This document shows, piece after piece, positions 300 through 34,105 of a DNA stretch of 64,000 nt; the first letter of the stretch is position 1; the number at the start of each line of letters is the position of its first letter. Source of the DNA: Epithemia pelagica (Eukaryota; Protista; Bacillariophyta); the NCBI GenBank assembly GCA_946965045.2, contig OX337233.1, forward strand, positions 2,480,001 to 2,544,000, written 5' to 3'. The position numbers and the translations under genes were made by a program. Below the pieces are notes generated by a model. The model made no database searches. It had not been told where the DNA came from and saw nothing but the letters and a program-made list of their open reading frames with translations.

Positions 300-344
300 A
301 ACCGGAAATCAAAAATTGAACATGGAAATTAACGCCATTCGTAA

Positions 345-397
345 TCGAGTAGTAAATACACTACTCCGGTAAAGTCGAGTAGTAAATACACTACTCC
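345..397. repeat. Left subterminal 23-bp direct repeat, each copy a hairpin (GAGTAGT-AAATAC-ACTACTC)
   Basis: TCGAGTAGTAAATACACTACTCC at 345-367 and 375-397. The same GAGTAGTAAA motif occurs at the right end. Confidence 0.85.
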
Positions 398-1482
398 CAT
401 ATCTTCCTCTCTTTGTATGATACTCATTATTGACGTCATATCATTTTGAACCCTTTATTCTTGTAGATTTTGCCATTTGGAACATTTTGATATATGATAT
501 TGTACACCGATTCCTTCGTTATCGCTCTCGTCGTCTCGTTTGAAAGTTCAACGATTGTCCTCATTTTTGTTGTCTGACTCCAAAGGTCCATGTTTGATTG
601 CTGATTTCTTTCTCCCGAAGTACAATCTAGTGCCAACCTTCTCCATTCTGCTTCGTAACATTACAACGAACTGAAATACAAAAGGCCATGTCGTCAGCTC
701 CTTCCGATTCCATTGAAGATACGCAAACGTCCACAAGCGCCTATTCGCAACCATTGCTTGACTCATCAACCCAAGACAACGAATCAAGCCAAGTGTCATC
801 AGTGCCTGCTCCAGTCCCTACCTAGTAGAGATTCATCAATACACGCTCTAGAAGAGCCACAATTGATTACCAACTGATACCAAGGTTCTCCACGGGTCAG
901 AGAACAAAGGAAACCCAAGGGTTCTATCGTAGGGATAGTCAGGACACTGAAGACGTGATGATATGGTAATGTTAATGATTGTGAGCTTTAGGACTACGGT
1001 GTGTGTGTGGGTGTGCAGGTCTGGTCAGGGTGCATGACTGATATATTCATGGCGCTGACAGGACTGGTATGGTTGGAGTAGACATGGATATTGTGTATTG
1101 GAAGTATATGCACTTGTATATCATATACCAATGCCAACAGCTCTTGCTTTGTCATGATATAGGTAGTTTCCTTGGCGCGTTGCTGTTTGCATTCTTTGAT
1201 TTGTGGGAATAGAGATATGGTCTCGCGTGATCGTGATTCGTGCTTCGGTTACTTAGGCCATTGGGCTAAGTCGTGGAGGTGCGTAGTCGGATGTTGATTG
1301 CGCGCGCTTGAGAATAATGGGCGCGCACGTGTTGGGCCATAATTAATATCCGATCGGTCGCTCATAACGCGTGCATTGCGAGCATGCCTTGGCCGAAATT
1401 AAAAGGTCTGCGAGCATGCCGTCATTCTTTTCTCACTTTTACGAAAATGTCATCGGATGCCATAAAATACTAGCATCAGTCG

Positions 1483-3935
1483 ATGAGTTGTAGATTCCAC
1501 CACAACCTAGTTGTTGGTGAGAATTCTGCCACTACCCAACGTTCACGACAACCACCACGACTCCGTTTCTCATATGCAAAGCGAAAGCTGTACGCACCGC
1601 ATACATTTTGGCTTGATCCAACGTACACCGACAGGTTTCAGCAGTCGTTCCCTTCTCGCGACATGAGAACTCCGTTGGTTCTCGAAGGGCAGATTATCGC
1701 TTGTCCCACAACCAAAAATGGCCATATGTACGTGGTTTCATGGGACCAGCGTAATTTCCCCACGCTAAATCCTCAATGGGTGCGCCGCCAGTTCACTTCG
1801 TCGCCTTATATCAAGGAGAAGCTCCAGCAATTTATTGTGGACTTCGACGAAGCAACACTTGCACGGAAAAATGAATCTCAGAGGAATAACGCAACCGCAC
1901 ATCCAGCGACAGTGACAAAGACAGCCACTGCACCTCAACAAGGAAGATAACCACAAGTCCCTCTATAAAGGACCTGATGGACTTCGACCTGGGGTCTCTG
2001 ATAACTTTTCAAATCCTTGGGAATGTTTTCAGTTTGTGGGTGGTCTATCCAGTTCAACGATTGCAAGAATGGCAACGGCCACCAATATGTATTTTGACCA
2101 AAAGATAAAACCAAATCTTTTTTCACGCCGTGGATACTACCATTCCCAACGATGGGAAAATGTCACAATAGAGGAAATGACAAGGTTCCTCGGAATAATT
2201 CTCATGATGTCTCTGCGGCCCGTCGACGGAGGAGGGTATGCCGCACATTTTCAGACATCAAACCGGGTGTACAATGTTGGTGCTGGCCATCCGTTGGTAG
2301 AAATAAAAAACAGCACTGGTTGGGCTTCTCAATACATGAAGCTGGCCAGATTTCGTCAAATAAGGGGCGCCTTCCATTTGGAGGAAGAGTCTAGCAGACG
2401 TGGTGGCGACAAGTGCCACCAGCTACGGAAGTTCATCACATCAATGAACGCGGCGTCGCGAAGAAGCTTCTATGTGCCGTAAGACTTGGCATTTGATGAG
2501 GGTGGGATTGGTTGTCGGTCTAGGTATTGTCCGGTTCGACAATACAATAAAGACAAACCACAGAAGTTCAGAGTGGATTTCTTTATCCTCTCGTCTTCTT
2601 CAACCTACGCAATCCTACACCTCGACGTATATCAAGGGGCCAACGCCACTAATTCTTATATACACCAACAAGCATTGAATCTCCCAACTACAATGAAAGC
2701 GGTAGTCAATGCATGCTACCAGCTTGAGATGCATAAGCTGACGGACGGGTATCGGCATATCTCTAAATAACCGGTACTGTTCTCCGAAGCTCGCTGTGAT
2801 TCTCCGTGACTGACTGAGAATCTTTTCCACTGGTACATGCCGTACCAATAGAGTCGGTTGGGACAAGAACAAGTTGAATCTAAAGAAAGGATCGGACAAT
2901 CGGGGTGCAGTACTTTTGTACCACGATGCTGTAAACGGTCTAGTGTTTGGTCAATGGGTGGATTCAAAAACAGTCAACTTTGTGTCTTCGTTTGAAGACT
3001 CTGGAAGCGGCACTGTATTACGTCAAGTAGGAAGTGAGAAACGTGAACTTACTTGTCCCGTACCCTTGATCCGGTACCAAAATAACATGGGTGGAGTAGA
3101 CAATGGCGACTAAATGCGGTTCCAGTTTGGTGGGTTTGCCAACGTCACCCATTTCAAGAAATGGTATAAAAAAGCAGGCTTGGCGATTCTCGATTGTATG
3201 CTATTGAACAGTTATATAGCATGGAATTTGTCTGCTGGTGACCGGCTGAGGTCACGACGGAGAAAGCTTTCTCGCTACGGGTTCTACACCATCGTCGCCC
3301 AGATGATGTGTAGTTATAGAACCCCCCAAGAAGTGGATCCATTGGCGCGCCGAACAACCAACACCGAACGTCCTGCTCCTTGTGCACATGATCATTATCC
3401 AGTTGCAATCGAGGACAAGAAGCAAGTGGCCTGTGCAGTATGTCTTTTGGAGTATCGGTGGAAAAAAGACACCATGAAAATGGCTGGGATCTACAAAAAT
3501 GTCGGAAGATGCGCCAAGTGTGGGATTTGTGCACACCTTGTTGGTTGTCAGAGTCGAGCCGGTGAAGGGTGGAAGATCCATTCTCTACCTCAATTCAAGA
3601 CTATGACATGCTTTGAGATCGTTCACTGCAGTGAAGGCCAAGAAATCTTTGTAGCTGCGGAAGAGGGAGCCAGGTACACATACACGGTACGAAAAAACCA
3701 CGAGACTGTTGCCAAACTACGAGAGGACCATGGTCTGCAACCAAGTCATAGTCGGAAAAGGTCAGCTGTTGAGTTCCGTATGCAACGACGACAAATAAGA
3801 CAACGTGCAGACGAAGTAGGAGATGATGCAGACGAAGTAGGAGACGATGATAATGCAGACAAGATGGAAGATGTTGTCGAGGACAACAGCAACTCAGAGA
3901 ACAACTCAGATGTGGAAGACACAGAAGAAGTCTAG
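1483..3935 (+). pseudogene. piggyBac (DDE_Tnp_1_7-type) transposase pseudogene with C-terminal Cys-rich domain
   Basis: Motifs DLAFDEGG, YNKDKPQKFRVDFF, (D)NRYCSP, GGVDNGD and KKWYKK...LLNSYIAWN, plus C-terminal CAHDH..CAVC..CAKC..CAH..C. Broken by stops at 2480, 2811 and 3111 and frameshifts near 1910-1950 and 2765. Confidence 0.92.
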
Positions 3936-4004
3936 CGCAAGATATGGAAGAAAAGAGTATCTTTGCATATAATACTAAATAGTGAATGAATCTGTTTATC
4001 ATAA

Positions 4005-4681
4005 CTACTCCAAAGTGTCGTCAGAGTTCTGGATAAATCCTACGTATGGTTCGTTGTTGTCTTCATTGGGAAAGTTCTGACGGATGAATTCGACCAAACA
4101 AGCAGGGAGTTCAACTCTATTTCCACGGCCAAGAGTACCATGAAGTTTGTTAGACAGGCGGCGATAAAGCTTGTACCGGATCGTACGGTTGGGCTCTCCT
4201 TGCGCCTTCAAGTGAGTAGCAATCTCGTGGAGGTAGGGGAGATGCTGAAAGATCTCACAGGGGTTCATCTGACAGGTGCCACAAACATTCTCCCAGTAGT
4301 AGCCTTCAGTCGTAGACTGCGGTGAGTTCTGGTTTAACTCGAATAGAATGCGTTCAATACTCTCTACGCAAGCATATTTGATAGGCATGTATCGCGTCTC
4401 TGTACACTCCGTAGTTTCGTGGATAACTTCTCCATCCTCGCCAGTAACCATTACTTTTGACTTCTGTAACGTAAATGGAACGAACATTCCACTACGGGTC
4501 GGATCGTCGTCGTTGGGGAGAGTAGCATTGGCGATCTCAATGGACTCGACGAGATCTGTAAAGCAAAAGAAAAATGAGGTGAGGTGTAGGGAGACAAAAG
4601 CAAACGAAACAATGAATTGATCTTGCGTCAAGACAGAATCTCACCTTCCAAGGGGTTACTTTCACTCATGTTGATGTTCAT
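4005..4681 (-). CDS. Accessory protein inside the piggyBac, KolX / P2X7 C-terminal ballast-like; join(4681..4645,4555..4005), 195 aa
   Basis: GT-AG intron 4644-4556 (GTGAGA...pyrimidine tract TACAG) joins MNINMSESNPLE to DLVES in frame. C-terminus CGTCQMNPC...NRTIRYKLYRR..HGTLGRGNRVELPACLVEFIRQNFP..YVGF. TATAAA at 4692-4687. Confidence 0.75.
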
Positions 4682-4843
4682 ATACCTTTATATTGTAAAA
4701 TAGAAACAAAGACAATGCATTGGTACCTTGCAATGAATGGGCCGACCTCTATCGTGATGATTGCAACGCAGATGATAGTGCGACCGACCGAAACCGGACC
4801 GTTTTCAAACCCTGTTAAGGCCGGAGCATTAAATTCGAGCATT

Positions 4844-4878
4844 TTTACTACTCCGATAATATTTATCCGAGTAGTAAA
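4844..4878. repeat. Right subterminal 16-bp imperfect palindrome containing GAGTAGTAAA
   Basis: TTTACTACTCCGATAA-TAT-TTATCCGAGTAGTAAA, one mismatch between arms. Confidence 0.85.
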
Positions 4879-5777
4879 TGCAATGCTCCAAATCCCTTAA
4901 AACGTGTTCCTTACGAATGGCGTTAAGAAGACCTCTTGAAACTGTTCAATACAGTACACTACTGACCACATTGAAGGCGGAAATCCGCAAGTAAAAGAAT
5001 CTACCTAAGTAGGTAGGTAGAAAAAGTGGTTTGTGGTGGCCTCATATGCGGCAAAGCCAATCTCATATTGAATATTGAATATGAAAGTTTTGGGTTCATA
5101 TTGATCAAAACCTTCATATGAAGGGTTTAAGGATTAAGGAGAGTGGGGTAGCGTGGTAAAGGTTTGCAGAATTTTTCAAGTGCCGAGAGATTAATTCCAG
5201 GGTATTGAAGTCACAAAAATTCATAATAACTTTGACTTTAAACTTGAAGTCGTCTTTTCCGCCCCCCTTTGACTTGATTTTCTCTCGAAAGTCATTTACC
5301 CAGGTACTTGTTCCTCACTTATCCAAGACATCGACTCCTCCTCGTCCTCACACATACACTCACTTAATAACACTATGATTAAAATACTTGACCAACTCTG
5401 GGGGGGGTAACGGCCCCCCCACCCATATCCTCGAGCGGGATCCGGAATCGCTCCGCAGTCGCATATCTCCAGAATATGTGATACTGCGTTTGCTGTGGGC
5501 GAGTGTGCCTCCGAGCAGAGAGCCCATCTCCTTGTACTCACAAAGTGAGCCCACATCCTCGAAATATCTTCGCAGAGATGCAGATGTCAGCTGCCATGGG
5601 TTGCCATACCCAAGCATCCAACATTGGAGAGAAACTCCCTGGCTCCAAAGACAGGCCAGCTGACGCGCAACAAGCGACCTAGACTGAACCACCGTAGTGA
5701 GTAATCCAGTCGAGTCTTCTTCCCGTTTGGTCGTTCTCTTATCCATTGTCTCATTCATCTCATCCATCCTTCTCTTG

Positions 5778-7325: not shown

Positions 7326-10300
7326 TTAAAAAAGGACAGAGAAAAGCAACAATCAACGGTTCATGTTGAGACTTGTTCCACAATACACTCCCTACTGGTA
7401 TGGAAAACACAAAATCCGCAACCTTGCCCACTTTTTTCGCCAACGATTTGACATCAACGCTGGACAAACAAAAATATGCGCAGTGTGTGTTTGTATGTGG
7501 CGGGCTTCGCAGAGTTGATCGACTGCGACATCAGCAATGGCCGGGGGTGGAACCCAGACAAAATTTCCCTGTTCGAAAGCTTCGTCGAACCAGTCTCTTG
7601 CCTCCAACGTCTTCCAACCTGCAACATTGTGAGCACACGACATCAACCAATCAACCACGCCCTCTTGTCTTTGGACCACTGTCTTGTTCAGGGGGACATA
7701 CAGAAGCATATCACTCCCCGCCATCACACTCGTCATCAAGTCGCCCCTTGACAAGCCATCCGTCCCTTGTGCTATCATCCTAGTACCTGCAACCCAGACA
7801 ACCCGCAAGAATATGCTTCCTCGCATCTCCAAACGTTTGGTACGCAATGCCAGCTCATATAACAATGGCGATGTGGACGTCCCGCGAAAGAAGGCCGACT
7901 CTGCTGTCGAGTTGTCGGTAAACATAAAAACTTCCGTCCCGAAGGGTATCGTCCCATTCTCCACAAGAGCTTCCAGGCGCAAGACCAAGTTATACAATTC
8001 GCGGAAATTCGATGAGCGGGAACCATAATCCCTGGTCCACAGACCGTGCTCTGTTTCAACTTTATGGGATCCATAGATCCATAACGATGAACCAAAACCC
8101 TCTCCTGAGGCATCCCCAAAAACGATCGCCACCTTCGATCCTTTCCTGGGTCTCGCCAGAATTTTAGGCGGAACCGGATCCTGGGCGAGTGTCGCTAACG
8201 CTTCCACATCGCTGTCAAACCGTGGCACCTTCTTCACCTTAGCTGGAGGGGTTGAATCTCGCAAAGTCAATTCGCTGATTCTCTTCCGTCGATCTTTTTC
8301 GGGCAGTCGCCAGCCTTCATCATCTCGATCCGATCGCCAAGATTCCAATGTCAAGTGGATTCCTTTTAAGTACGGGACCATGATGTCGTATGTTAAGGAA
8401 ACATACACCAAAAATCCCCTAATTCGCTCAAGTTCCTTGCGATCGATCGATTCCTCTGACCTCGCCCATTCCACCAATCTATCAATATGCCCACGCGTCT
8501 TGTTCCACCGCTCTTGTGCCACAGTCTTAAACACCTGCCCATCCGCAGTAGTTTCTACGATCGCTCCAGCCCAAGCACCCGGTGTTTTACTTGGATCTCG
8601 ACGTTTCCTTGCTGCATCCTGCAGCCCAAAGTACGATGCGCCCTTTGCCATTTTGCTAGCGGCCTTCCACGCTTCATCTTCCGAAGGAGCTGTTTCCCTC
8701 AAGTCGTCCACATATGGATGCACATCTGCTGCAATATCCCCGTTGGCCCGAATCTTACTAATCCAGGGCAAAGACGGATCGTATTCGGCGTCTCCAGGTA
8801 AGTTTAAGCGCACATCCACCCATCCAAATATGTTGTCAGGATCGCTCTTATCTCCGAATATAATTCTCTTAACTCTTTGAGCGCATTGGGTGGTCTGATA
8901 CGGGGACGTCGTTAAGCCCATCGCACACCGCGTCCAAGCCTCCCACAAACGAGTCTTCCCGAACTTGTCTTGGAGCTCCTCCGGAAACAAGTCCGTGATA
9001 TCGATTCCCGTGTAACACCTAAGATCGGGATGCACCCAAAAATTCAAGAACATTTCCCCGAAGTCGTTGTCCGCCGACCAAGTCTTTCCCTCCATCGAGC
9101 AAAGCATGGCGTTCACGTTACCGAGACCGAACCAAGGAGCAAACAACGAAGCATTCAAGCCACTCTTGGTCCCATCATAGACCATTCGTATATCGTCTTC
9201 CCCTTTCGGGACCGAAAAGAAACTGGTCAACGACTTAATTCCATTGGTCGGAGCGATGTAAGCTTGTTGTCTCACTTTCGACAACTTCTTCTTTTCCTTT
9301 GCTCTGCTTTTTACATCAGGATTTGCCCTTTGTCTGCGCCGATACGCCGGTCGAGGACCTATCCACATTGGAGCCACTCCATCGCGCATTTCGGCTTGCC
9401 ATTCGAGGACGGGCATTCTCCAAAAGAAAGGAGATGACCCGCCATCCCAGTCCCACCAAGATGCCATGGACGCATGTGTCATTGCACTAAGCCCGGCCTG
9501 GATGGTTCTTTCTCGTAAGTCCTCCTCATCGTCCGCAAAACTCTGAGAGCTCCACCAACTCCAGAAATCCACACTCACTGATCTTTTCCAGTATCGCAAC
9601 GCGCCCTTTCTGATGGAATTCAAAGCGCTAACGATCCGATCCCGATCGTCATTTCTTCCAACACTCAAAAGCCGACAGATACGATCGTCCCAAAGGTAAG
9701 TCGGGATCTTCGCGTCGTCGGATTTCGTTGCCTTTAAGTTCCTGTCCTCACGCCGTTCTTCCGTGTTCAACGAGCCACCGCCCTCTTCACTGTCAGGAAT
9801 TGCATACAAAGGAGTATCCTCTTCCGTCATTCGTGCGTCCTGGGCGGACGTCTCATGCACCTCTCGTTCGACGTGAGTTCCCACATCCGTCTCCACCTCT
9901 TGCTTCCTTCCTCTCGACCCTTCTAACTCTTGATCTTCCTTCCATTCCCGCAACGATCTCGCCACCTGAACCCTGCTTTTAAAAGGAACCACGATGTTAT
10001 CCAACCACTCCTCCAATTCACCCTCTGCTCCTTTCTTATGCATCATGGCTGGAAAATCCATAGTCACAGCCAATTCACGCGCCGTCAACCGTCTCTTGAC
10101 CACTCCGGACGAGGCAAACACACTTGGAAGGTTGTGCTCTGCATAACGATCTCGTTTCCAGCACAATTTGCGATTCAGCACAGAGGCTGGATCCCTGGCT
10201 CCCTTCCTCCGTGTCTTGTCCAACTGTGACAGTTTAATCTCACGTCCATGCACTGTGGGATCCACTACTCCTCGCACGGTTGTTTTGCTCAGGCCCCCGT

Positions 10301-11063: not shown

Positions 11064-13447
11064 TCAAGCCTTGTCCTTCTTTCCGTTCTTGTTTGAAGCT
11101 GCTACGGCCGAGTTCACTGACCTCTGCAACTTGTCAAGACGATCCTCCACACTGGACTTCAAGCCATCGAATTTTGACCGAGGAGTGGCGAAACGAATGA
11201 GGTGCTCATGAAGGATGAGCGCTATCTTGGGGTGGCCACTAAACTCCGCCACTCGATACTCCTGCATCACCTCATGAGCCCTCAACGTTCCCCACAACAT
11301 ACCCGCCGGGGTATTCGAAGCTCTTCCCGGTGCTCGGGCCTCCCGCAGACTTTTGAAAACTGCCCGCACGCAATGCGAGATCAGAATCCACACCTCCTGC
11401 TCGCTTGCCTCGCTCTCGGCCTGGACCTGGCGATGATACCTCACCATCCAGTGGCAGAGGTCATCCCAGAAGGCCTTGCTGAGGTGGAGCATTTCCTTCG
11501 CCACGCTTGACGGCTCTGTCCCAAACGCAAACAATTCACCTATGGCTTGATCCAGCGTTTGTCGACCATCGCGAACATAATCCAGAATGCGCTGATGAAT
11601 ACCTTCGCGGCCTGACGGAGGATGGAAATCCTCAAACTTCGGAACTCCGCCAAGAGCGCGCGAATTCGTCGTCATGCTCTGGTCTGAACCCTTGCCCAAC
11701 AACGGGGGGACCTCCAAATTGAAAGACGCGATGTAAGCCGTATGGTAGGGAGTTTTATCCCTTACCTTGGCTGTGGTGGCACGAAGATTTGCCGCACGTT
11801 CTTCATCCAAGCTTGTATCGGAAGTGGCTAACGACAACAGCGACACTGCATCCACAAAAACATGGGGATCACCCAGAGCATCATGCAAGGTAAGCCAAGA
11901 AAGACAAAACATCCGGGAAGGGAACACAATCGAGCCAACCGTGATGGCCTCGTTATCTATTTGTTCCTGTAGATCCTTGAATTCCGTTCGAAGCACCGTC
12001 ATCTCTTCCTTCATTCGTTGAAGCTCCTCTTTCAAAACCGTCGTGACAGACGACATGCCTGTGGGACTCGTCGAAACTGGAGCACCCGTCGAAGCTGCCG
12101 GTCCAACACTCCCTCCCAGCACTGCTCCCACTGAACCCCCACCAATCGTCCAACCGAACATGCCTCCACTCCCAGACGACAATCCACCGGCGCCATTTGC
12201 CTGGCTACCAGCAAACTGCTGCGAACGTTCCAAATTTTCCATCCTTCCTTTTAACTCCTGCAAAAGATCGTCCCACTTTCCTCCCGGATTAGACTTGTCC
12301 TTGGTGGATTTGGACAATAGCGCCAACGTCGGGTTCACGAATTGTTTCCGAAAATCACCCTGCTCCGAGAAGAACGTCTCCAGCTCGGCCTTTACTTCGG
12401 CCTTTACCACGGCTTTCAACAAATCGGCCTCTCTTTCGAGAGACTCCAATCGCGCAGACAACTCGGGAGCAACCGCCTGAGAACCCAAACGCTTTTCGAC
12501 TAGATCTTGAATGGAACGCATGGTTGCGGTACAATGCTGCAAAACTGAGAAAGCCGAATCAGTACCGAACTCTTCTGGACGCCGACCCAACAATGAATGG
12601 AGGACCGATAACTTGACATTGAGCTGTTCAATGGCTTCCTCTTGTTCCTCTTCTACCATCTTGCGCTTGTGGGACGAACGCTGACAATCATCACGCAAAA
12701 GATTGACGTTGTCAACCAAATTACTCCATGCACCACTCTGCAAGATCTTGACGGAGGGAGTTGGCTGCTGAGAACCAATGTCCGTTGGCACCTCTTTCCA
12801 AGGGAGGGATGAACGGCCGACTGGAGTCTTCAGTCCCACTTCACCCAACTCATCAAGTTCCACTACCTCCTCGTCACTATCACTCCCCGACACAGTTCCA
12901 ACCTTCACCCGCTTAGCAGGCTTGGGTGTCATAGCAGCAAACTTAACTTCTGCCTTCGTGTTCGCCATCACCTTAGCTGCAATTGTAGGACTCACAGTAT
13001 CGCCCGCCTCGCGGGCAACGTCTTGTAGAGATGCGAACGTGGCTTGCCAACTCTCGAGGGATCGCGGACTCAACTCGAGTTCACTCCAGTCCACATCCCG
13101 AACACACGAAGCCGGAAGAACAGGTTGACAGAAAATCGTATCTGCCGCGTCGGAATTGGAAGAGACGCTACCACCCCGAATAAATATACCAGCAGAGTCA
13201 TCCCCCACCAAAGAAGCCCAGTCTTGTTTGCGAGCCGAATGCGAAGCCACGGAACAATCGGAACGAACACACACTCGCTGCCCCGCACCAATGATGCCGC
13301 GGCATAACAACTCAAAACTAGGTTGTTCGAAACGAACAATACCGTAGAGAGAACCCGAACGAAGGGCCCCCCCCCCCCGGTCACAGACTCACCTGACGAC
13401 CCCACAGAAGGAGAAGAATCCGGAGTACTTCCCCACTCAAACTTCAT
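11064..13447 (-). CDS. ORF1 (Gag-like) of the DIRS element; probable ATG at 13447, frame broken at the G12 tract (13378-13367)
   Basis: 748-aa ORF 13310-11064 with N-terminal C-x10-C-x4-C-x4-H and coiled-coil regions. It has no ATG of its own at the 5' end; upstream MKFEWGSTPDSS... joins in frame if the G tract is 10 or 13 nt. Confidence 0.8.
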
Positions 13448-17788: not shown

Positions 17789-20700
17789 ATGTCAGCCTTG
17801 TCGGAAACCAAAGCGACAACCGTAACTACAATGTCGTCGTCGTCGTTTTCCTTGCGAGCCAATGCACCCGACTTTTGTCCTTCTTCTTCTTTGTCGTACC
17901 ATCAGTTCGAGATGGTCTCCTCTTCCTCCCCCACAGCTTCAACAACAGACCTTATCCACACACATGCTCCACAGGTCATGTCCTCGTCATTCCCCGTGTC
18001 GTCAAGTGTACAAAAGGATCATCACCATCAAGAGCCGCCACCAAGACAACGACATTCACAGCGACGACGACGACCACACAAACAAAGACAAGAACAACCG
18101 AAAACACACCATGCAGCTCGTCGAGAACCGAAACCCTCGGACAAGAATCAGAGCGAACCTCACCACTCCGACAACACAAAGGCCCAACATCGCAACCACC
18201 ACAACCACAAGAGAAACAAACAAAACAACCATCACCCGACCCAATCCAATCCAGACAGCAGAAGGTCGACCGAACAACGACAAGGACGTGGACGACAAAG
18301 AGAAAGAAGGCAAGGAAAACAAAAACATCAAGGGTCTCGACCATGCACGAATGCCAATTCTGAAAAGGACCAAAGAGAGGCACGAGACAGGAGGACCAAC
18401 AAGAGTCCACCTGTAGAGTGGGAGGACTCCACTGCTGTAACTACCGTCCTTTGGGAAGAATCGACCGCTTTTCCCGAGCTGGTCGCCACCACTGTCAACA
18501 ACAACCAGGAGGACACGGCCAAATTATTCGAGCATACTACCACACAACAAGGAGAAGAGATCCACACGAAAACGAACACGGCGACGACATGTTGGTCCCA
18601 GGCGGTTCCCCAATCCCTCTTTGCTCTTCCACAAGACGATCCATTGGTCCAGCCGAAAGATTTATTAGACGACGGGATCTCCACCACACAGAAGACCGAA
18701 TTGCCTGCCTCCCATCTACTTCAAGATTCGTCGTCCCTGGTTCCCTTGACACTGTTATCATCCAAAAAGAACAAGACAAGAGTCAAAAACTTGAAACGAA
18801 TAGGTCAGCTCTCCAGATCCACAGCCAGTGTCAGTGGACCACAAGTCGTGGAAACAAAGGATGACCAACAGACTCCATCGCCACCATCACCACCATCACC
18901 ACTCGACTTGGACCTTTCAACCACAGAAAGGGTGGAGTCGACCGGAAACCCAACACAAGCAACAAGCCCGCCAAATCCACTGGGACGACGACGGCGTTTC
19001 AATATGACACGTTTAAGAGATCGTTGGTGGGACATTCTCAACAATTTACCGCAAGGTGATCCAGTTCTGTCCAAGAACATGCTGCCACTCGAGGAGCACC
19101 ATGCCAACATGCAAGACGATGATGACGACACCAGTGTGGATGACAATGCGTCCCCCGTCCCTCTCAACACTCAGTACCAGTCTTCCTTTCTGAGTTCCAT
19201 GGAGCAACCACCACTTGCGTCGCACTGGATGGACTACCCATATCCTATCCATGAAGCAATCAGGCAAAATGATGAAATGGCATTACGAACCTTACTTTCC
19301 ACCTCCTCCATGCCGTTTCATGCTGACAGGGGACTGGAGTCGAAGGATGACCAGGGTATGTCGGCACTTGCACTGTCAATGCAGTTGCATCGTCCGCAGC
19401 TTTTGGCAATTTTGCTGCAATCTACTCGGGAACATGCTCTAACACCTCATGTCATCCATAAAAAGCATCACAACAAAGGAACCAAAATCACGCCCAAACA
19501 TTACATGCTCCGACATGCACTGCACATGGCCGTATCCAATGGCAATGAAGAGTGCGCGGTCGTATTTTTGGATTTCAATATTGCCAGTGTCTTGGCCAAG
19601 AATGACACGACAGACGACACACCCATTCACTTGGCCTGTCGTTCCTCTGCTCCTATTGGAATCTTGTACCAATGTCTCAAACGCATGGACAATGCCATGA
19701 CTACCAAAGTCATGTCCCAAAAAAACAAAAAGGGTCAAACCCCACTTCACGTGGCCTGTGCCAGTGGCCGTGTCGACTTGGTAGAAGCCTTTCTCACTCA
19801 TTGCTCTTATTCTCTCCTGTCCAAAGTCTTGTCGGTGCAGGATGCTGAATGGCAGACGCCACTCCTTGCTGCCGTGGCTTCTGGTTCGGTCGATGTTGTC
19901 ATGGGCTTGCTCATGTGGAAAGGCAACAATCACAAACGCATCCAAGAAGGCGGTGCCAAGGGTCATTGTGCCTTGTCGTGGGCCGTCCGAGCACGCAATG
20001 TCGAAATGACTCTGCTTTTGTTGGAGTTTAATGACAGTTCATCGTCCTTGCTGCCTTCTGTCTCGACGACGACAACAACAACAACCCACGGGAGTGTCAA
20101 CAGTGCCACTGCCAATCAGGGATACAATCTCGTTCATTCCTTGTACATGGCCGTCCGCATGATGCAACAAGAAATGGCACCCTGCGATTCGGTGCAGCTC
20201 GAGCTAATCCGAGTCTTGGTCGATGCAGGTGCCAATCCGTATTCCAAAGAGACACCGTCCGGAGAATGTGCACTTGTTTTGGCCACAGAAACCGCATTGG
20301 ACTCTGTCGTGGTCCAAATCATGGTCACATCGTACGACGCCTATTTGGACACGATACAAAAAGCTCGTCGACGAGATCCCTTTTTGCGGAAACAACCCGA
20401 ATCGTTCTTCCGCGGCTTGGAGGCACAAGAAGAAGGCACTCGTGTTGCGGCAGTACGGGAAGCACTCCTGGTCGCCTTGTATCGGGCATGGACAACCACC
20501 GAGGACGCTTCTGATGGCTTCATTGCCATTGCCTTGACATTACTTCAAAGGGGCCACGTCAAGCTGGATGCAACGTCGGTAGACCGTTTAAAACACGCTT
20601 TGCAGACTGTGGATCGATCGTGTTTGGTCTCTGAAAGCTGCTTTGCAACAAAGCAAATGACTCTCGAAGCATCGTACCAACATCCGACTAAGGAGAATCC

Positions 20701-21769
20701 CCTAGATCCGCTGATTCCATCAACAACAGATGGAGGGAAGCAATCAACGACGAAAAGAACGAGAGCATCCAAGAGTGATTTGAAGACTGGTTTGTTGTGG
20801 AGTACGGCTATGACTCGATCCTCCTGGCGACCAGACAAAGACTACGTTTCTTGCGAGTGGTTACGCTCCTCCGTTAGCGGCAAAGACACTACAAATAATT
20901 ATCCTACGACTCCCAAGTCAGATGTGGAGCTCACTAGTAAGGAAGGAGATAAATTTTTGGCCCATTCGTCCTTTGTGTGTTTGAAAAGTGGAAAACTTGA
21001 CGCCGCTTTACGATTTGAACGCATGTCTCGGGAGTGTACGGATGAATTTGACGACGAGGAACAGAACCTTGTGAAGCTACAGCTGCCAGTCAGTTCGACT
21101 GTTTGCCAATGGGTACTGCAGCATTTTTACCATGGGGCCATAGTTGGACCCTTTCCTGAGAACAACGACCAACTCTTGGACAGTTTTTTTCAACTGTTGG
21201 ATTTTGCAGAGCAATACCTGTGTCCTTCTCTCGTGCAAGAAGTGGAAATGCGGATTCTGTCGGCTCGACCGAGACAATGCCACTGTTGTCATTGCTCTTT
21301 TCGAAATGAAACGAGTCTTGTCGAAAACGGTATGATATCGTGTACCTATGTGACGACGGGACCGTCTGCGTGTATCCAACCTGAATCAGCCTTGGAAGTT
21401 CTCGCCATTGCCTTGCATTACGTTGAAGGGGATTGCATGGGTAGCAGCGGATATGAACTCTTGGCTTCAACGGAGGAGTTCACGGGGCCGTCATGGAAAG
21501 CGCCAGACAGTACTAAATTCCACGTGTTTCGAGCCATGGAGCATTTGAGAGGAGTTTTAGCAGAGTATATTCTCCAAGAATTCCGTTTGATTTCTGAAAG
21601 TGTTATCTTTGATTTGCATTTTGAATCACAGGACACGAAGTTGACCGACGACCGAGACAAGCAGCAACGATGCGAGTCCCTCCTTCGCACTTGTCTGGAC
21701 ATTCTTGCCACCAGCCCAATCTTATCATCGTCAAGCCGTTCAGAGGATGCATCCAATGGGCGCAAGTGA
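17789..21769 (+). CDS. Ankyrin-repeat + BTB/POZ protein with N-terminal PAM2-like motif
   Basis: Ankyrin motifs TPIHLAC, GQTPLHVAC, TPLLAAV, ALSWAV. BTB: SDVEL..GDKFLAHSSFVCLKSGKL...VLQHFYHG..LLDFAEQYLCPSL. N-terminal FSLRANAPDFCP. Confidence 0.85.
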   Translation: MSALSETKATTVTTMSSSSFSLRANAPDFCPSSSLSYHQFEMVSSSSPTASTTDLIHTHAPQVMSSSFPVSSSVQKDHHHQEPPPRQRHSQRRRRPHKQRQEQPKTHHAARREPKPSDKNQSEPHHSDNTKAQHRNHHNHKRNKQNNHHPTQSNPDSRRSTEQRQGRGRQRERRQGKQKHQGSRPCTNANSEKDQREARDRRTNKSPPVEWEDSTAVTTVLWEESTAFPELVATTVNNNQEDTAKLFEHTTTQQGEEIHTKTNTATTCWSQAVPQSLFALPQDDPLVQPKDLLDDGISTTQKTELPASHLLQDSSSLVPLTLLSSKKNKTRVKNLKRIGQLSRSTASVSGPQVVETKDDQQTPSPPSPPSPLDLDLSTTERVESTGNPTQATSPPNPLGRRRRFNMTRLRDRWWDILNNLPQGDPVLSKNMLPLEEHHANMQDDDDDTSVDDNASPVPLNTQYQSSFLSSMEQPPLASHWMDYPYPIHEAIRQNDEMALRTLLSTSSMPFHADRGLESKDDQGMSALALSMQLHRPQLLAILLQSTREHALTPHVIHKKHHNKGTKITPKHYMLRHALHMAVSNGNEECAVVFLDFNIASVLAKNDTTDDTPIHLACRSSAPIGILYQCLKRMDNAMTTKVMSQKNKKGQTPLHVACASGRVDLVEAFLTHCSYSLLSKVLSVQDAEWQTPLLAAVASGSVDVVMGLLMWKGNNHKRIQEGGAKGHCALSWAVRARNVEMTLLLLEFNDSSSSLLPSVSTTTTTTTHGSVNSATANQGYNLVHSLYMAVRMMQQEMAPCDSVQLELIRVLVDAGANPYSKETPSGECALVLATETALDSVVVQIMVTSYDAYLDTIQKARRRDPFLRKQPESFFRGLEAQEEGTRVAAVREALLVALYRAWTTTEDASDGFIAIALTLLQRGHVKLDATSVDRLKHALQTVDRSCLVSESCFATKQMTLEASYQHPTKENPLDPLIPSTTDGGKQSTTKRTRASKSDLKTGLLWSTAMTRSSWRPDKDYVSCEWLRSSVSGKDTTNNYPTTPKSDVELTSKEGDKFLAHSSFVCLKSGKLDAALRFERMSRECTDEFDDEEQNLVKLQLPVSSTVCQWVLQHFYHGAIVGPFPENNDQLLDSFFQLLDFAEQYLCPSLVQEVEMRILSARPRQCHCCHCSFRNETSLVENGMISCTYVTTGPSACIQPESALEVLAIALHYVEGDCMGSSGYELLASTEEFTGPSWKAPDSTKFHVFRAMEHLRGVLAEYILQEFRLISESVIFDLHFESQDTKLTDDRDKQQRCESLLRTCLDILATSPILSSSSRSEDASNGRK

Positions 21770-21790: not shown

Positions 21791-24700
21791 TTATGCCATT
21801 GTGTGCAGAAATCCTCCTACGATACCAAAGAGTAACACACCAATATGTTGTGTGAGGTGATGACTGGACGATGACCTTAATGAGATTCGTTCCGTTGTAG
21901 TTGTTGAAGAACGATTTAATCCATCGCGGTTTGTTCCAAATGCGTTGTTCACACCTACGGTAGAAGGTGGACGGGACGTGTTTGGGTTAGGGACAGCTTG
22001 TATTGGTGATGGGGAAGGGGGAGTTGACGGTATCGACGGAAGTTGGGATGGGTGCCGGGTTGGCGAGACGGAAGGGTGTTTCGTTGGAGAAGGAGAAGGT
22101 GGAGGTGTGGGAAGGAACAGTCTTGGAACGGTTTTCTCACTGCATATTTCCTCTACATTGCGCTTCACGTCAATTTTCGTATTGTGTGGTCTCTTCGATT
22201 CCGTGTCATTGTACAACCCACTCATCGCCTGCAATGCACGGCTTCCTGGGCAGTTGGAAGTGGCGGCGTTCCATCCAGTTCCTGGCCCTACCTTATAGGG
22301 AGTGTTGTCGAATGAGAGATTGTCTCGAGTTTGTTCCAATGGAAGGACGACGCTGGGAAATGGGATTGCAATAGCTTCGGACGATTGGACAGCAGCACCA
22401 GTGCTACCAGGACCACGGTACCCGTTGGAAAACAGCAGAAGTCCCAGAGCATAGGAATTGTAGATGCTGTTCACATCAGTGAGTATTTTGGGAAGCTTCG
22501 CCCCTGGAGCAATGTCGAAAGATGTTGCTGTGGACGCAATCGTGGATGGAACATTGATTGTCATGTACGCTGAGCTATCGTGCGGCTGTGATATTCTTGG
22601 ATACGTTGCTGACGAAAAGCTCACACCAATCGTACCAGAAGATGTTATCCCCATATCCTTCGAACATGCTCTTATGATAACTGTTGCGCTGTTTGTTGGA
22701 TGGTCTGCGACAAAGCCAGTGCATTCCCATTCACCTCCTGCTACCTTGAGTCTGCAGTCTGATGTGCCAATATCATTCGTTCGAGGACCGCGATTTGCCA
22801 AGACGTAGTCTTCGGTCGAGTCCCCATTAACATCAATTGAAACTTGGATCTCTGTGTTAGACAAAGATTGTCGACGTTCCCACAATTGAAATGCAAATTC
22901 GAGAATGAAGCCACAGGTGTCATCAACCTCGACTGTCCTGAACCCTATGTACTTAAAATCTGCTGGTGGCGACGTAGTCTCCCCGTTTTTGGGATTTGGT
23001 TCTGCGTCGTCCTCACTAACGACCAACAACTCATATAGTTCCATTTGTGCTGTGCCAGCCCCGTTATTTTCAAGGCCGATTGCAAAATCTGCAGGGAAAA
23101 TGTTGTTGTCCACGGGTAGGCGTTTCTTATTGGCCGTGACATCGGCAGCTTTCCGCAAAATACCGGTAAACGGAATGTTAATGTCATGACCAGTGGTTGA
23201 ACTAAGTGTAATCCATCCATCAATCTCATTCTTATCCAGTGTCCAGGCGCTTGCGGAGCTTAAACCACCCGAAGTCATATAGTTGGATGGTACCTTCGAG
23301 GCTTCAATAGAGAAAACCACTTCCATGGTCATTTTTTCTGAACAGGATTGTTGAGACGACGTTGGAGATAGGGACCTGGTGGTTATAGTCATTGCTCCAG
23401 AGAGCTGGACCATCAAGCTCCGAAACTCGGCTTGGGCAGTGATTTCTTGGCACCTGTCCACCATGCGTGTTACTTCAATCGTTCTTCGAATTTCCATGTT
23501 CTTTGAAACATCTACAACTCCAAGGGATATGGATGGTTGGCCATCAAATTCTGAGTATGCCCAAAAACTGGCCTCGACAGCCTTGGCAATGTCCACTTCC
23601 CCACTACCAGCCAGGGAGATTGGTGCCTCTGAGGAGCTACCAATCCGGTATTTAATTGTTTTGCGAGCATTGTTCATGAGTATAGCTTTGATGGCAAAGG
23701 CAGAACACTCGGTGCATTTGGATACGACAATGGCGGCTGCTCCTGCAACAACGGGGCTCGAGTACGAAGTTCCTTGTGCGGTGAATCCATCAGAACCTTT
23801 TCCAGAGTTGGCCACAATCATCTTGTCCCCGGGTGCACTGATATCAGGTTTTAATATGCTGAGAGTACCCGGCCCTCTGGCAGAAAAAGATGCCATGAAT
23901 CCATGGGGCTGAGTGGTGGTTGCTCCGACGGTGATGGCGTTAAAGACATTAGCTATTCCTCCAAGAATGAAAGGCCTGTTTCCAAAGTTTCCGCTGGGCA
24001 CAACAATTGTCATACCAAGCAACGTAGCATAACGCTCAATCACTCGAGCAAGCATGTGATAGTATCCATTGGCAAATCGCTGTCCAAGAGAAACTGTGCG
24101 CACACAAGAAAGGACAGCTCAGTTTTGAGCCAGATAAATATCTTTCCAACGCGACATAATTTTTGTACGTACTGTTGACAACATCTGCTCCTTTTTTATT
24201 GGCGTAATCAAGTGCCGCAATCACAGCATAGTCTGGACATATACCTCTGTCGTTACATACTTTTGCCGCAATCAGTTCCACGTCGGGAGCCATGGCCAAA
24301 ATGGCCGTTGCCACTCCCGTTCCATGTCCCGATATTTGGTCGAGAGGATTCGTGTCCTCGTCCGTACTCGCAGCTCCACCGACAAAGTTATGGCCATCCA
24401 CGACACGCAGGGTAGGAAAGAGGCCATCGGCACGTGGACGAGTGCTAGCAGCGGCAGTTTCAAAGGCTGTTGTGGACCCTTCTCCCCCAAAGATGGAGTG
24501 GGTATAATCAATACCAGAGTCAATGACCGCCACTCGAACTCCTTGCCCTCCCAAACAGTGGTCCCTGCGCACTTTTCCTGCACCAAGGTATGTGTCGGCA
24601 ATGACACGAATATCCTGCGTCTCACCGGATAAATCTCGAATGCCGTCATGTGTATTTCCATTGTTATCCTCTCCAACAACGGATGAGTCCTCTGTCAAGT

Positions 24701-30484: not shown

Positions 30485-33400
30485 ATGAGTGGCAGTCGTA
30501 TAGAGGAGAAGACAACAGGGTTGGCCCGCATCCAACCCATTGACGAATCGTCGCGACGACGAATCGTGGCTGGACAAGCCGTCTTTGACTTGGCGAGTGC
30601 TGTCAAGGAATTGGTCGACAATTCGTTGGATGCCAACAGTCAATCCATCAACAGTACGTACCATCGGTGGGGGACAGCGAGCACGTGTGTGTCTGTGTTT
30701 TGGCGCACCTCCGGAGCCGCATGGTTCTTTGGATTGGAGGCTCATTTTTTGTCGTGTTGTGGTTCTCTTTCTTGTTGTTCATGTTCACTTTGGTGTGTTT
30801 GATCAGTTCGATTGTTTAATCAAGGATTGGATATTGTGGAAGTTTCGGACGACGGATGTGGTGTTCCAGTGGACTCGCGGCACTTGTTGGCCACCCCGCA
30901 TGCCACGAGCAAAATTCAATCCTTTGACGACATTTATTCTTCCACTACGAGTAACACTACGCTGGGCTTTCGTGGCGAAGCCCTCTTTTGTTTGGCCAAT
31001 TTGAGTGGCAACTTGGTCGTGGCGACTCGGACGGCCGACGAAGCCGTGGCGCAAAAACTGGAATATCGCCGCGATGGATCACTCCGGGTCGATTCCGTGA
31101 CGCGAGTGCCCAAAAAGGTGGGAACGACCGTGGCCGTGGTTCGATTGTTGGAGGCGGTTCCGGTACGACGAGCCGACTTGAAACGACGGATTGGAGAACA
31201 ACGACGCAAATTGGTCAAACTCATTTCCGGATATGCCATTTTGGCACCAGCCGTGCGATTTCAACTCATTGACATTACTACAGCAAACAACAAGGGTCGA
31301 AAATCACAATCCTCTGCAGCAGCACCGCGAGAACATGTCTTGCTCGCCACGCCTGGTCAAGGACCGCAGAAATTGCCCGAAGCCATTTCGGCTGTCTTTG
31401 GGTCGGCCTTTTGGAACAGTTTGACAGAGTTTCACCTGGATCTCACGAAGTTGATTGCCGATGCACCAAAAACTAGTACGGATTCCCAACAGAACGACAA
31501 CCACAATTCAAAAGAACCGCAACACTCCACCCCATCAGCATCCTCTCCATCAGCATCTTCTTTGGCTGCCGCAACCCCCTTGGAATCTCCCAAATGGCAG
31601 GTACGGGGATACATTTCCAAATGTCCTTCTTCTTCGTCGTTCACCAACCACCCCTCGTCGGCATTGTCGTCGAACGAACGACGGTTTCGCGACGAACAAT
31701 TGTATTCCATCAACCAACGACCGGTCGACATGCCTCGCGTGACGCGCATGTTGATGACTGTCTGGAAGAGTCTCCAGACTCCGAGCACAGCGCAGCGACG
31801 GAGTCATCCTTCGTGCATATTGGAATTTACCTTACCCAACCATGCCTACGATGTCAATGTATCACCCGACAAGCGCGAAGTCATTTTGCCGCAAGAATCC
31901 CAATTGTTGGATCTGTTACAACATCATGTGCAACAAGTCTGGTCGGCCATGGATGGACACTTTGATTCGGCGCCTCGTCTCGTGGTCGTACCACCACCAC
32001 CCGCGCAGCTGTCCTCCTTGACTCATCCCGAAGACGATCCTGACGACGAGCAAGAAGAAGAAGAAGTGGATACACCCACCAAATTCAATCGTCGTTACGC
32101 CTTTTCGCACGATGTTCGAAAAATTCGACTGCAGCACGAGTACGACGATGGTCGCATTCGATCGTCCGAAGAGAAATGGGAACCACGAACCTCCTTGTCG
32201 TCGTCCGCCGAGTCGCATGAAGAAGACGATGCGGTACAAGTTCTCGTTTCGACCGAGACCAAGACCCCGGAGCATCGCAACGGCGGTGTTCCGCAAAAGG
32301 AGAAATCAGAAAATGAACAAGAACCCTGTGAAACGGATACCATGGACACCTCTGTACCGAAGCAGTCGCAGGCCGATGCTTCGGCAACAAAACCAACAAA
32401 AACTTGCGCTCAAGTCACACCAATCAGTGCGGAGCGAGTCCCCATTTCTGTGGAAGATCAAAAACTCGCCCAGACACCCTTGTTACCCGAAAAGCGCAAA
32501 TTGCGAGCCACTACTAGCAACCCCCATGAGTTATCTCCGACCCAAGAGGATCGATTGTGGAGAGCAGCCAAACGACGCTTTCATGACTCGTCTCGAGTAG
32601 AAGCGCAATTGGCGACCCACGAGTCGTTTGCACAATTCCGAGCAACCACCGGTGGACCACGATCCAAACCCCAACGACCGACTCCTCATTCTCAAAACAA
32701 GCTTGAACAATTTGGCTTTTCTGCCACATCCAACCAGCGGAAGGAAAAGGACCGTTGCGTCAACGATGACAGACTGTCCCACCGTGAGACGAATGCGACA
32801 GACGGTGGCCCTTCCTGCAAACGAGTATCCTTTGATTCGGCACCCACCTTGGACAGCGAGGGACCCACCGATGACACCACAACAACGCGACCTGGGCCAC
32901 ATGCGGACCATATTGTAACAGTCGAAGAACGGAAGCCGATTCCTCATTTCGAGCAAGGCAACCATAACACAGTAGTTTCGAGCCAAGAAGGGGAGCCCTC
33001 AGTATCTTCGGTCCAAGATCCGAATCAGCGCTGCGAACCAAACGGAAACGAGCCAGTTGCACCGGCCCGGAGAGACAGTATCTCACGTGACTCTGTCGTG
33101 TGGGAAAGTTTCTACAACACAAGCACGGTTTTGGAAGCTGCCAGGAAAGAAAGGATCGCTATGCTGGATCGAAGAATAAGCTTGCAGAGCGACGACGAGG
33201 TAGGACGGAATAATGTTGAACCTGGAGAAGGCGAAGACGGGAGCAAGATATCATTACAGCAAGGAGACTTTGGTACCATGGTTGTGATTGGACAGTTTAA
33301 CATGGGATTCATCTTGGCCAAGAGCGCTGAAAATCATTTGTGGATCATGGACCAACACGCTTGCGATGAGGTGTACAATTTTGAGAAACTGGTCGCTGAA

Positions 33401-34105
33401 ACAGTGATTCATGAACAGCCGTTGATGGCGCCTTCGCCCTTGGAGCTTTCGGTGGAGGAGGAAAGTTGTGTTCTAGACAACATGGACATTTTTGAAAAGA
33501 ACGGATTCCGTTTTCAGTATCAAGCCGACAAACCTCCACGATTTCGCCTATCTTTAACTGCAATTCCTCACAGTGGAGCTCGAGATGGCCGAAAGGCTGT
33601 TCAGTTTGGCAGGGACGACGTAGCTGCATTATGTGCCATTCTCGGTGCTGATGATACCGGTACATCATCATTCGATACTGCAGCTGGGGGTGGGACAGGT
33701 ACCGACGGTAGTGGAATGTACGGCAACAATGCCGTACGCCGCTACGCGAGCCAACGATCGGACAAGAACATAAAGGGTGACGATGCAGACCGAGTGATTG
33801 CACGACTTCCGAAAGCCATTGCAATGTTTGCAAGCCGAGCATGTCGTGGAAGTATCATGATTGGGAAAGCACTTTCCTCTGGGGAGATGGATAGAGTGGT
33901 GAAACACTTGGGCGAAATTGAACAACCCTGGAATTGTCCACATGGAAGACCGACTATGAGGCATGCGGCAGATTTGAGACTTCTCATGTCCGAGGACGAA
34001 CGACACGTCGCCGCAAGACTTGCTGGATCTACAGTGACTATCATGTCTCAGGAAATGGAATCACAAGAGGATCAGGTGGGTTTGACACAAGATATGCCCA
34101 CATAG
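30485..34105 (+). CDS. PMS2: Mismatch-repair endonuclease PMS2 (MutL family); join(30485..30653,30807..34105)
   Basis: VKELVDNSLDA, DDGCG, ATSKI, GFRGEAL (GHKL ATPase). DQHACDEVYNFE, ACRGSIMIG and CPHGRPT (endonuclease/Zn). Intron GTACGT...ATCAG. Confidence 0.95.

Follow-up and report, generated by a model that had tools for sequence, protein, structure and literature searches.

The 64,000-nucleotide stretch of Epithemia pelagica DNA analysed here as a whole (the window; positions 2,480,001 to 2,544,000 of contig OX337233.1, assembly GCA_946965045.2; all coordinates below are window-based) contains a transposable element at 329–4926 that is very probably a decayed copy of an autonomous two-gene piggyBac family, encoding a transposase of ~1055 residues and an accessory protein of ~191 residues of the P2X7 ballast/KolX type. 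The two genes are convergent, and the same arrangement was found in all 14 elements fetched (the window copy and loci L001–L013, representing five subfamilies), with ~60–70 nt separating the accessory gene from the transposase gene and, in every element that has both ends, one pair of termini enclosing the two. An earlier reading of the sequence (the original prediction) had proposed a two-gene piggyBac element at this position, and this pairing bears it out.

Structure of the element and its two genes

The element is flanked by TTAA on both sides and bounded by perfect 12-bp terminal inverted repeats, as originally predicted, with the left end (329–344) reading TTAA followed by CGCCATTCGTAA and its exact reverse complement lying at the right end (4911–4926). 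Identical TTAA-flanked termini occur at sibling copies elsewhere in the assembly (L005, L006, L007, L011, and other loci), and the window copy, L001, L002, L004, L005, L006, and L011 all have TTAA at either side, in keeping with the piggyBac target site. The ends combine short terminal repeats with asymmetric subterminal repeats, two on the left and a palindrome with one repeat on the right, an asymmetry that is typical of piggyBac ends. The 23-nt subterminal repeats are probable transposase-binding sites, and in the other subfamilies the palindrome apparently lies at the same place with a different sequence (alignment read by eye). Classical piggyBac termini are 5'-CCC...GGG-3', whereas those of the element are CGCC...GGCG, which is a trait of this subgroup and compatible with membership of the piggyBac superfamily. 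Changes in the 12-bp repeat are mirrored at both ends in L002 (CGCCATACGTAA; 7737–7752 / 12611–12626) and in L004 (CGCCAATCGTAA; 7594–7609 / 12489–12504), indicating that the two ends co-evolve inside each subfamily.

The larger gene encodes a piggyBac-type transposase. Fragments of its open reading frame (ORF) on the plus strand, from 2036 to 3110, match Pfam DDE_Tnp_1_7 with E-values of 1.6e-14, 7e-4, and 0.01, whilst the sibling copy L005, which is 97% identical, has an intact ORF of 1055 residues, and served as the reference for lesions, matches the same family at E 7.6e-44. The L005 transposase also aligns to the piggyBat structure 9C0F (E 1.7e-15), with the three Asp motifs FDEG, MDN, and GGVDxxDQ all present. 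In the window copy the second Asp motif is frameshifted and a stop codon follows the third. Six disabling lesions were identified in total, comprising nonsense codons at 2480 (AAA>TAA), 2811 (CGA>TGA), and 3111 (CAA>TAA), a 2-bp deletion after 2763 within the second catalytic-Asp motif, a deletion of ~632 bp at 1941/1942 that shifts the frame and beyond which the L005 coding sequence (CDS) resumes from its position 1171 at window 1940, and a 710-bp insertion at 822–1531 that is absent from L005, L010, and L012. The original prediction of at least three stops and two frameshifts was right but understated, the insertion having gone unnoticed. Public-run contigs show unbroken letters at all four small lesions, as well as the empty-site joint 817>1532, indicating that the lesions are private to the window copy. 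We read the insertion as a Copia-type solo long terminal repeat (LTR) with a 5-bp duplication, CTACC; it shares ~69% identity with sequence adjacent to Copia-type RVT_2 genes in L003 and L006, matches L012 too, and in public-run contigs is ~20–400 times as deep as the remainder of the element, pointing to a very high-copy repeat family.

The accessory gene is convergent with the transposase and lies within 921 nt of one end of the element. When the five subfamilies are aligned between the terminal repeat and the stop codon, the donor (an exonic G followed by GT(A/G)AG), the acceptor (C/T)AG, and the position of the predicted intron in phase 1 are seen to be conserved, whilst the sequence and length of the intron are not conserved and align poorly; exon 2 is well conserved. 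In subfamily 1 the intron holds no in-frame ATG, so that the 35 conserved residues at the start of exon 2 would be translatable only after splicing. The original prediction gave this gene as 4681–4005, with a canonical intron and an upstream TATAAA. Its open exon 2 and GT..AG intron stand, however the ATG at 4681–4679 arises from a G>A change private to the window copy (ACG or ACA in six siblings), and the start of the family is therefore the ATG at 4669–4667, giving a protein of ~191 rather than 195 residues. The TATAAA was rejected as a promoter, being only ~16–23 nt upstream of the 4669 ATG and not conserved between subfamilies. Among public runs, the element was located in three sets of contigs, all from DNA-like runs of a single study, and in no RNA run. 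One low-depth contig contains a 4505>4637 joint, which mismatches the predicted intron and was taken to derive from another copy or a repeat. The convergent stop codons are 69 nt apart (3936–4004; roughly 60–70 nt in the sibling loci examined), and the 3' ends of the two genes probably overlap, an arrangement that could generate antisense RNA.

Pairing and selection across the family

The close homologues of the accessory protein all lie in the window's own assembly, in five clusters of 5, 9, 1, 3, and 9 protein entries. Four diverged homologues (63–68% identity) are each separated by ~65 nt from the 3' end of a DDE_Tnp_1_7 gene and enclosed by TTAA and terminal repeats, and L013 is a further example of the family carrying the gene. 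The close siblings L005, L012, and L010 carry it, as do deletion derivatives. Intact transposase ORFs are found in L001 (1150 residues), L002 (1111 residues), and L005 (1055 residues), with an ORF of 968 residues in L012.

The association extends beyond this genome. Five remote homologues were inspected, and the three whose contigs continue past the 3' end of the gene (L015, L016, and L017, environmental contigs from other samples, with proteins ~25–30% identical to that of the window) each place the gene in convergent orientation to the C-terminal end of a related piggyBac transposase (tblastn E-values from 1e-12 to 3e-34). This indicates that the pairing is old and wider than the E. pelagica genome; with the gene present family-wide, the one-off capture of a host gene that the original prediction had named as a possible refutation is not the case. 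A search of metagenome contigs with a second alignment (A2) yielded no confirmed related locus.

Between subfamilies, the accessory gene differs at proportions of 0.12–0.29 of nonsynonymous sites (pN) and 0.64–0.94 of synonymous sites (pS, saturated), with an omega of 0.09–0.13 where calculable, so that the selection test proposed originally shows strong purifying selection on the gene between subfamilies. The transposase, with a pN of 0.29–0.34, has the higher amino-acid divergence of the two.

The family has also given rise to shortened forms. A non-autonomous derivative of 1863 bp, composed of element positions 1–1302 and 3955–4517 with the accessory gene intact, occurs at two unrelated, TTAA-flanked loci (L006:6526–8388 and L011:6706–8569), indicating that it was mobilised after the deletion. 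Loci L007–L009 (ENA ERZ21939226 ctg1256l; e.g. L008:1617–13700) hold an internally deleted derivative of ~2466 bp that is repeated in tandem, in five units or more, with a period of 2354 bp; each unit comprises element positions 105–1876 and 3928–4517, with an intact accessory gene and a transposase tail of 282 residues. Ahead of this array, three copies of the left end are stacked at spacings of 94 and 108 bp, and unequal recombination and aberrant transposition are candidate origins of the array. At L005:13472–14288 lies a related 817-bp element resembling a miniature inverted-repeat transposable element (MITE), which has identical TTAA and 12-bp termini, subterminal sequence 71–77% similar, and neither gene. 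Retention of the accessory gene in deletion derivatives was considered as a sign of a requirement in cis and rejected, since internal deletions mostly strike the 3.2-kb transposase by chance.

Homology of the accessory protein to the P2X7 ballast domain

Searches and structure prediction used the product of exon 2, exon 1 (8 codons) being too short to search alone. This product consists of a beta-rich N-terminal half and a C-terminal half resembling the P2X7 ballast and KolX. Five of six family members show a sub-threshold match to P2RX7_C and to no other domain, and an exhaustive profile search returned 793 homologues at E ≤ 0.001. In an alignment and profile of 60 significant homologues (A3), 31 members match Pfam PF20478 (P2RX7_C) at E ≤ 0.01 (best E 1.3e-6), and the A3 profile searched against the PDB finds P2X7 chains only, at E-values of 5.6e-7 to 7.7e-4 over residues 538–593 (538–592 in the best match), placing homology at the profile level within P2X7 ~476–595. 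The P2RX7_C search suggested by the original prediction therefore succeeds with homologues of the window protein, though not with the protein itself, as set out below.

The AlphaFold model built from the A3 alignment has a predicted local distance difference test score (pLDDT) above 90 over residues 90–170, whilst that built from six sequences only is poor (pLDDT 60). Re-scoring with VIA-align places P2X7 in all ten of the best chains, with Z of 5.8–8.3 and a root mean square deviation (RMSD) of 3.6–4.6 Å over 78–88 residues at 23–25% identity, and superposes model residues 87/91–177 on P2X7 475/479–595; the next chain, which is unrelated, has a Z of 4.2. Compared with the ballast of P2X7 (PF20478; PDB 6U9V, 9E3P), the C-terminal 90 residues are thus predicted to adopt the same fold (Z up to 8.3, RMSD 3.6 Å, 79 residues, 24% identity), the ballast fold being seen in a predicted model. 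An ESM-Atlas shape search has as its top match a cluster of stand-alone P2RX7_C proteins (TM-score 0.45 over 112 residues), and an ESM-Atlas feature search with the accessory protein gave no usable match.

Signature residues of the domain are retained in the profile and structural alignments, with equivalents of the CGxC at its start (C479/C482), R546, Y550, LPxC572 (L569-P570 and C572), IR578 (I577-R578), FP582 (F581-P582), and YxGF591 (Y588/G590/F591). The only conserved cysteines are C91, C94, C99, and C152, compared with the seven of the dinuclear zinc site; C91 corresponds to C479, C94 to C482, C99 probably to C506, and C152 to C572 (C94 and C99 read by eye). The segment around P2X7 ~483–505, with its cysteines, is apparently missing from the window protein (by eye), and C573 is likewise without an equivalent. 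Four conserved cysteines suggest one zinc site instead of a dinuclear site. In contrast to the ballast of P2X7, which forms the tail of a channel, the accessory protein would be a stand-alone soluble protein.

Two further observations concern the wider set of homologues. One remote homologue of 341 residues (P0068) appears by eye to contain two tandem ballast-like domains, with two matched stretches in the profile search, and many other homologues lie on contigs of ~1 kb that may be transcripts of environmental protists.

A number of results weigh against the assignment and the function built upon it. The window protein scores 13.6 bits against PF20478, short of the cut-off of 23.5 (E 0.065, profile positions 138–191 of 192), with the best family member at E 0.0036 and the remote homologue P0036 at 23.0 bits. 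A profile of six close family members finds no P2X7 in the PDB, giving chance matches to bacteriohemerythrin only, and Foldseek returns nothing from the PDB at E ≤ 0.001, with P2X7 only among the weak rows. In rat P2X7, guanosine diphosphate (GDP) is contacted by R546, H547, R574, R578, and K583 (Rump et al., PMC7016195), and two of these five are kept (R546 and R578, as R126 and R158), whilst H547, R574, and K583 are replaced by Y, V, and N and their contacts lost. With two of five GDP contacts and about four cysteines of the zinc site, neither nucleotide binding nor a dinuclear zinc site can be assumed. Furthermore, the intron and expression of the accessory gene are predictions from conservation, the MITE-like element without the gene indicates that the gene is dispensable in cis, and the role of the protein in transposition is one that we infer from linkage, purifying selection, and fold.

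If the likeness to the P2X7 ballast were convergent or spurious, and the protein an unrelated small cysteine-containing helical protein, a sub-threshold Pfam score, non-significant Foldseek E-values, an Atlas TM-score of only 0.45, and an aligned part as short as ~55 residues by sequence and ~80–88 by structure would all be accommodated. However, four independent routes converge on the same C-terminal segment of the P2X7 family and on nothing else, the 23–25% identity of the structural alignment is accompanied by matching signature residues, and the same finding has been published for other piggyBac families (PMC9587614), which leaves this explanation most improbable. We accept the accessory protein as a divergent homologue of the P2X7 ballast/KolX domain in its C-terminal portion, the relationship proposed in the original prediction, on evidence from profiles and folds rather than from a direct Pfam match.

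The intact accessory gene of the window copy

The original prediction had set an open accessory ORF against a dead transposase, a contrast that would imply selection on the window copy, with chance escape from mutation as the fallback. Polarising changes with three siblings identifies 16 window-private substitutions in 2538 nt of the transposase (0.63%) and five in 551 nt of exon 2 (0.91%), the latter being four nonsynonymous and one synonymous, with one further private nonsynonymous change in exon 1. The resulting ratio for the accessory gene of 5 nonsynonymous to 1 synonymous is near the neutral site ratio of 3.7:1. As ~4.6% of the possible substitutions would yield a stop, the chance of none among six is ~0.75, and allowing for the density of small and large indels in this copy, our estimate of chance survival for an ORF of ~580 nt is ~0.45. 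Exon 2 is open in all seven distinct copies of subfamily 1, as is expected for young copies. Given private changes that are near neutral and accumulate at least as fast as in the transposase, chance escape is the better reading, and the ORF is probably intact by luck and not through selection on this copy.

Retention of the gene by host-level selection, through co-option or domestication after the death of the transposase, would fit an ORF that is intact beside six disabling lesions, and there is a precedent in KolX, which gave rise to the P2X7 tail and to Nanor (PMC9587614). Nonsense changes also make up 3 of the 16 private transposase substitutions, compared with 4.3% expected (binomial P ~0.03); two of them are C>T, and the excess could be chance. 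Against domestication stand the 5:1 ratio and a rate at least that of the dead transposase, the survival odds given above, the position of the copy within intact terminal repeats at 97% identity to active-looking siblings, and the finding of no orthologous, fixed, transposon-free copy. Domestication is accordingly very unlikely, and the window copy is best regarded as an ordinary dead transposon whose intact small ORF is not to be read as a domesticated gene.

Features of the element and of the rest of the window

Table 1. Coordinates of the features of the piggyBac element in the window.
Feature	Position	Strand	Evidence or remark
Left TTAA target-site duplication	329–332		Flanks sibling copies too
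Left 12-bp terminal inverted repeat CGCCATTCGTAA, transposase side	333–344	+	100% complementary to right repeat
Two direct 23-nt subterminal repeats (345–367, 375–397), each with an internal 7-nt palindrome	345–397	+	Repeat detection
Transposase pseudogene, segment 1, beginning with the ATG (688) at which the intact sibling ORF starts	688–821	+	L005 CDS 1–134, 98.5%
Insertion, read as Copia-type solo LTR; duplication CTACC (818–822, 1532–1536)	822–1531		Absent from siblings; depth
Transposase pseudogene, segment 2, up to the ~632 bp deletion (junction 1941/1942)	1532–1941	+	L005 CDS 131–540
Transposase pseudogene, DDE_Tnp_1_7 core and C-terminal cysteine-rich region	1942–3935	+	Pfam; nonsense codons 2480–2482, 2811–2813, 3111–3113
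Exon 2 of the accessory gene, including its stop codon; 182 in-frame codons from 4553	4005–4555	-	Open ORF
Predicted 89-nt phase-1 intron, GTGAGA...TTTACAG	4556–4644	-	Donor, acceptor, position, and phase conserved in five subfamilies
Accessory gene exon 1, ATG 4669–4667 then 7 codons and 1 nt (25 nt)	4645–4669	-	Start shared by siblings
Subterminal palindrome (4844–4859 / 4863–4878) and third copy of the 23-nt repeat (4867–4889)	4844–4889		Repeat detection
Right 12-bp terminal inverted repeat, accessory-gene side	4911–4922	-	Complementary to left repeat
Right TTAA target-site duplication	4923–4926		Flanks sibling copies too

Elsewhere in the window, a plus-strand ORF of 1428 residues at 48231–52517 with gag_pre-integrase, SH3_retrovirus, and RVT_2 domains represents a Copia-type retrotransposon. 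Further long ORFs, apparently poor in introns, encode MutL-like (30812–34105), ankyrin-repeat (17789–21769), and subtilase (21791–24103) proteins.

Relationship to known systems and possible function

The KolX protein of Kolobok Kol0 elements has the ballast fold, with its region of homology corresponding to human P2X7 476–595 (Kojima and Bao 2022, Mob DNA 13:24, PMC9587614), so that the description of KolX in the original prediction as an accessory protein of Kolobok with this fold was correct. The same authors report KolX-like proteins without most of the seven cysteines in a small number of piggyBac families, and list piggyBac-2_GrCh from the red alga Gracilariopsis chorda and piggyBac-14_PI from the stramenopile Phytophthora infestans (PMC9587614, Data S6). 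Sharing of the module between Kolobok and piggyBac, two TTAA-targeting superfamilies, which the original prediction put forward, is thus already published, including in a stramenopile, and the suggestion of a possibly undescribed subgroup does not hold in that form. The reduced cysteine set of the window family agrees with the published remark, and piggyBac-2_GrCh shows by eye the same C-x2-C-x3-PC ... HG-LG-G-R ... P-C ... IR ... Y-GF layout as the window protein. In contrast to piggyBac-2_GrCh and piggyBac-14_PI, the family described here has another host, reportedly a diatom, together with CGCC...GGCG termini, five subfamilies, a phase-1 intron, and a beta-rich N-terminal half. The published account of the piggyBac proteins consists of one sentence and two sequences, without analysis of selection, structure, or distribution (PMC9587614), and our additions to it are a new host lineage with a radiation of subfamilies, evidence from selection and from the intron, support from the predicted structure with a four-cysteine site, and the spread of the pairing in environmental samples.

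KolX of Kolobok Kol0 (e.g. Kolobok-1_XT) is likewise a ballast-fold accessory protein of a TTAA-targeting DDE transposon, and its region 476–595 in P2X7 numbering compares closely with the structural match of the window protein at 475/479–595. Kolobok elements are distinguished by a DDE transposase with a C/DxxH motif and by 5'-RR...YY-3' termini (PMC9587614), whereas the element of the window has a piggyBac transposase (DDE_Tnp_1_7), termini of CG...CG, and an accessory protein with only four conserved cysteines, and is not a Kolobok. With canonical single-gene piggyBac elements (Trichoplusia ni; piggyBat, PDB 9C0F/6X67) the family shares the TTAA target, short terminal and asymmetric subterminal repeats, the DDD transposase core, and the C-terminal cysteine-rich domain. 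In contrast to these, its transposase is about twice as long (1055–1150 residues), with a long, acidic, and variable N-terminal region, a second gene is present, and the termini are not CCC...GGG.

The transposase of the window copy was destroyed by the solo-LTR insertion, two deletions, and three nonsense mutations, whilst the accessory ORF has accumulated amino-acid changes at the neutral rate and probably remained open as a small target. On the reading that we favour, the accessory protein would be a zinc-binding cofactor or regulator of transposition needed for persistence of the element; it probably works in trans, either alongside the transposase or on the subterminal repeats.

That the element profits from the gene follows from its purifying selection and strict linkage, which do not reveal the step at which the protein acts, and functional facts for the ballast fold are limited to binding of zinc and of GDP/guanosine triphosphate (GTP) in the receptor tail (PMC7016195). 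The small gene could accordingly be a selfish passenger, or its product could target the host, for instance in anti-silencing or signalling, and benefit the element outside the transposition reaction. However, the presence of the same domain with two unrelated TTAA-targeting transposases, those of Kolobok Kol0 and piggyBac, is more easily explained by shared chemistry or target handling, and Pfam scans recognise no chromatin or enzyme domain in the accessory protein; we hold a passenger or host-directed role to be rather unlikely. A cofactor or regulator of transposition remains our preferred explanation, and a bolder form of it is offered as a tentative suggestion that may well prove wrong, namely that the ballast/KolX protein is the obligate cofactor of a deep and widespread piggyBac lineage of marine protists, and a portable module that passes between superfamilies and from which the vertebrate P2X7 tail ultimately derives. 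As the same protein serves Kolobok Kol0, it would then act on a shared step of TTAA transposition, such as target capture or the handling of ends.

To our knowledge, no biochemical role has yet been assigned to the P2X7 ballast domain, and we are aware of no functional study of KolX so far. A family in which an apparently intact transposase and accessory gene (the L005 type) exist alongside deletion derivatives and MITEs therefore offers a practical system in which to study the function of ballast proteins in transposons.

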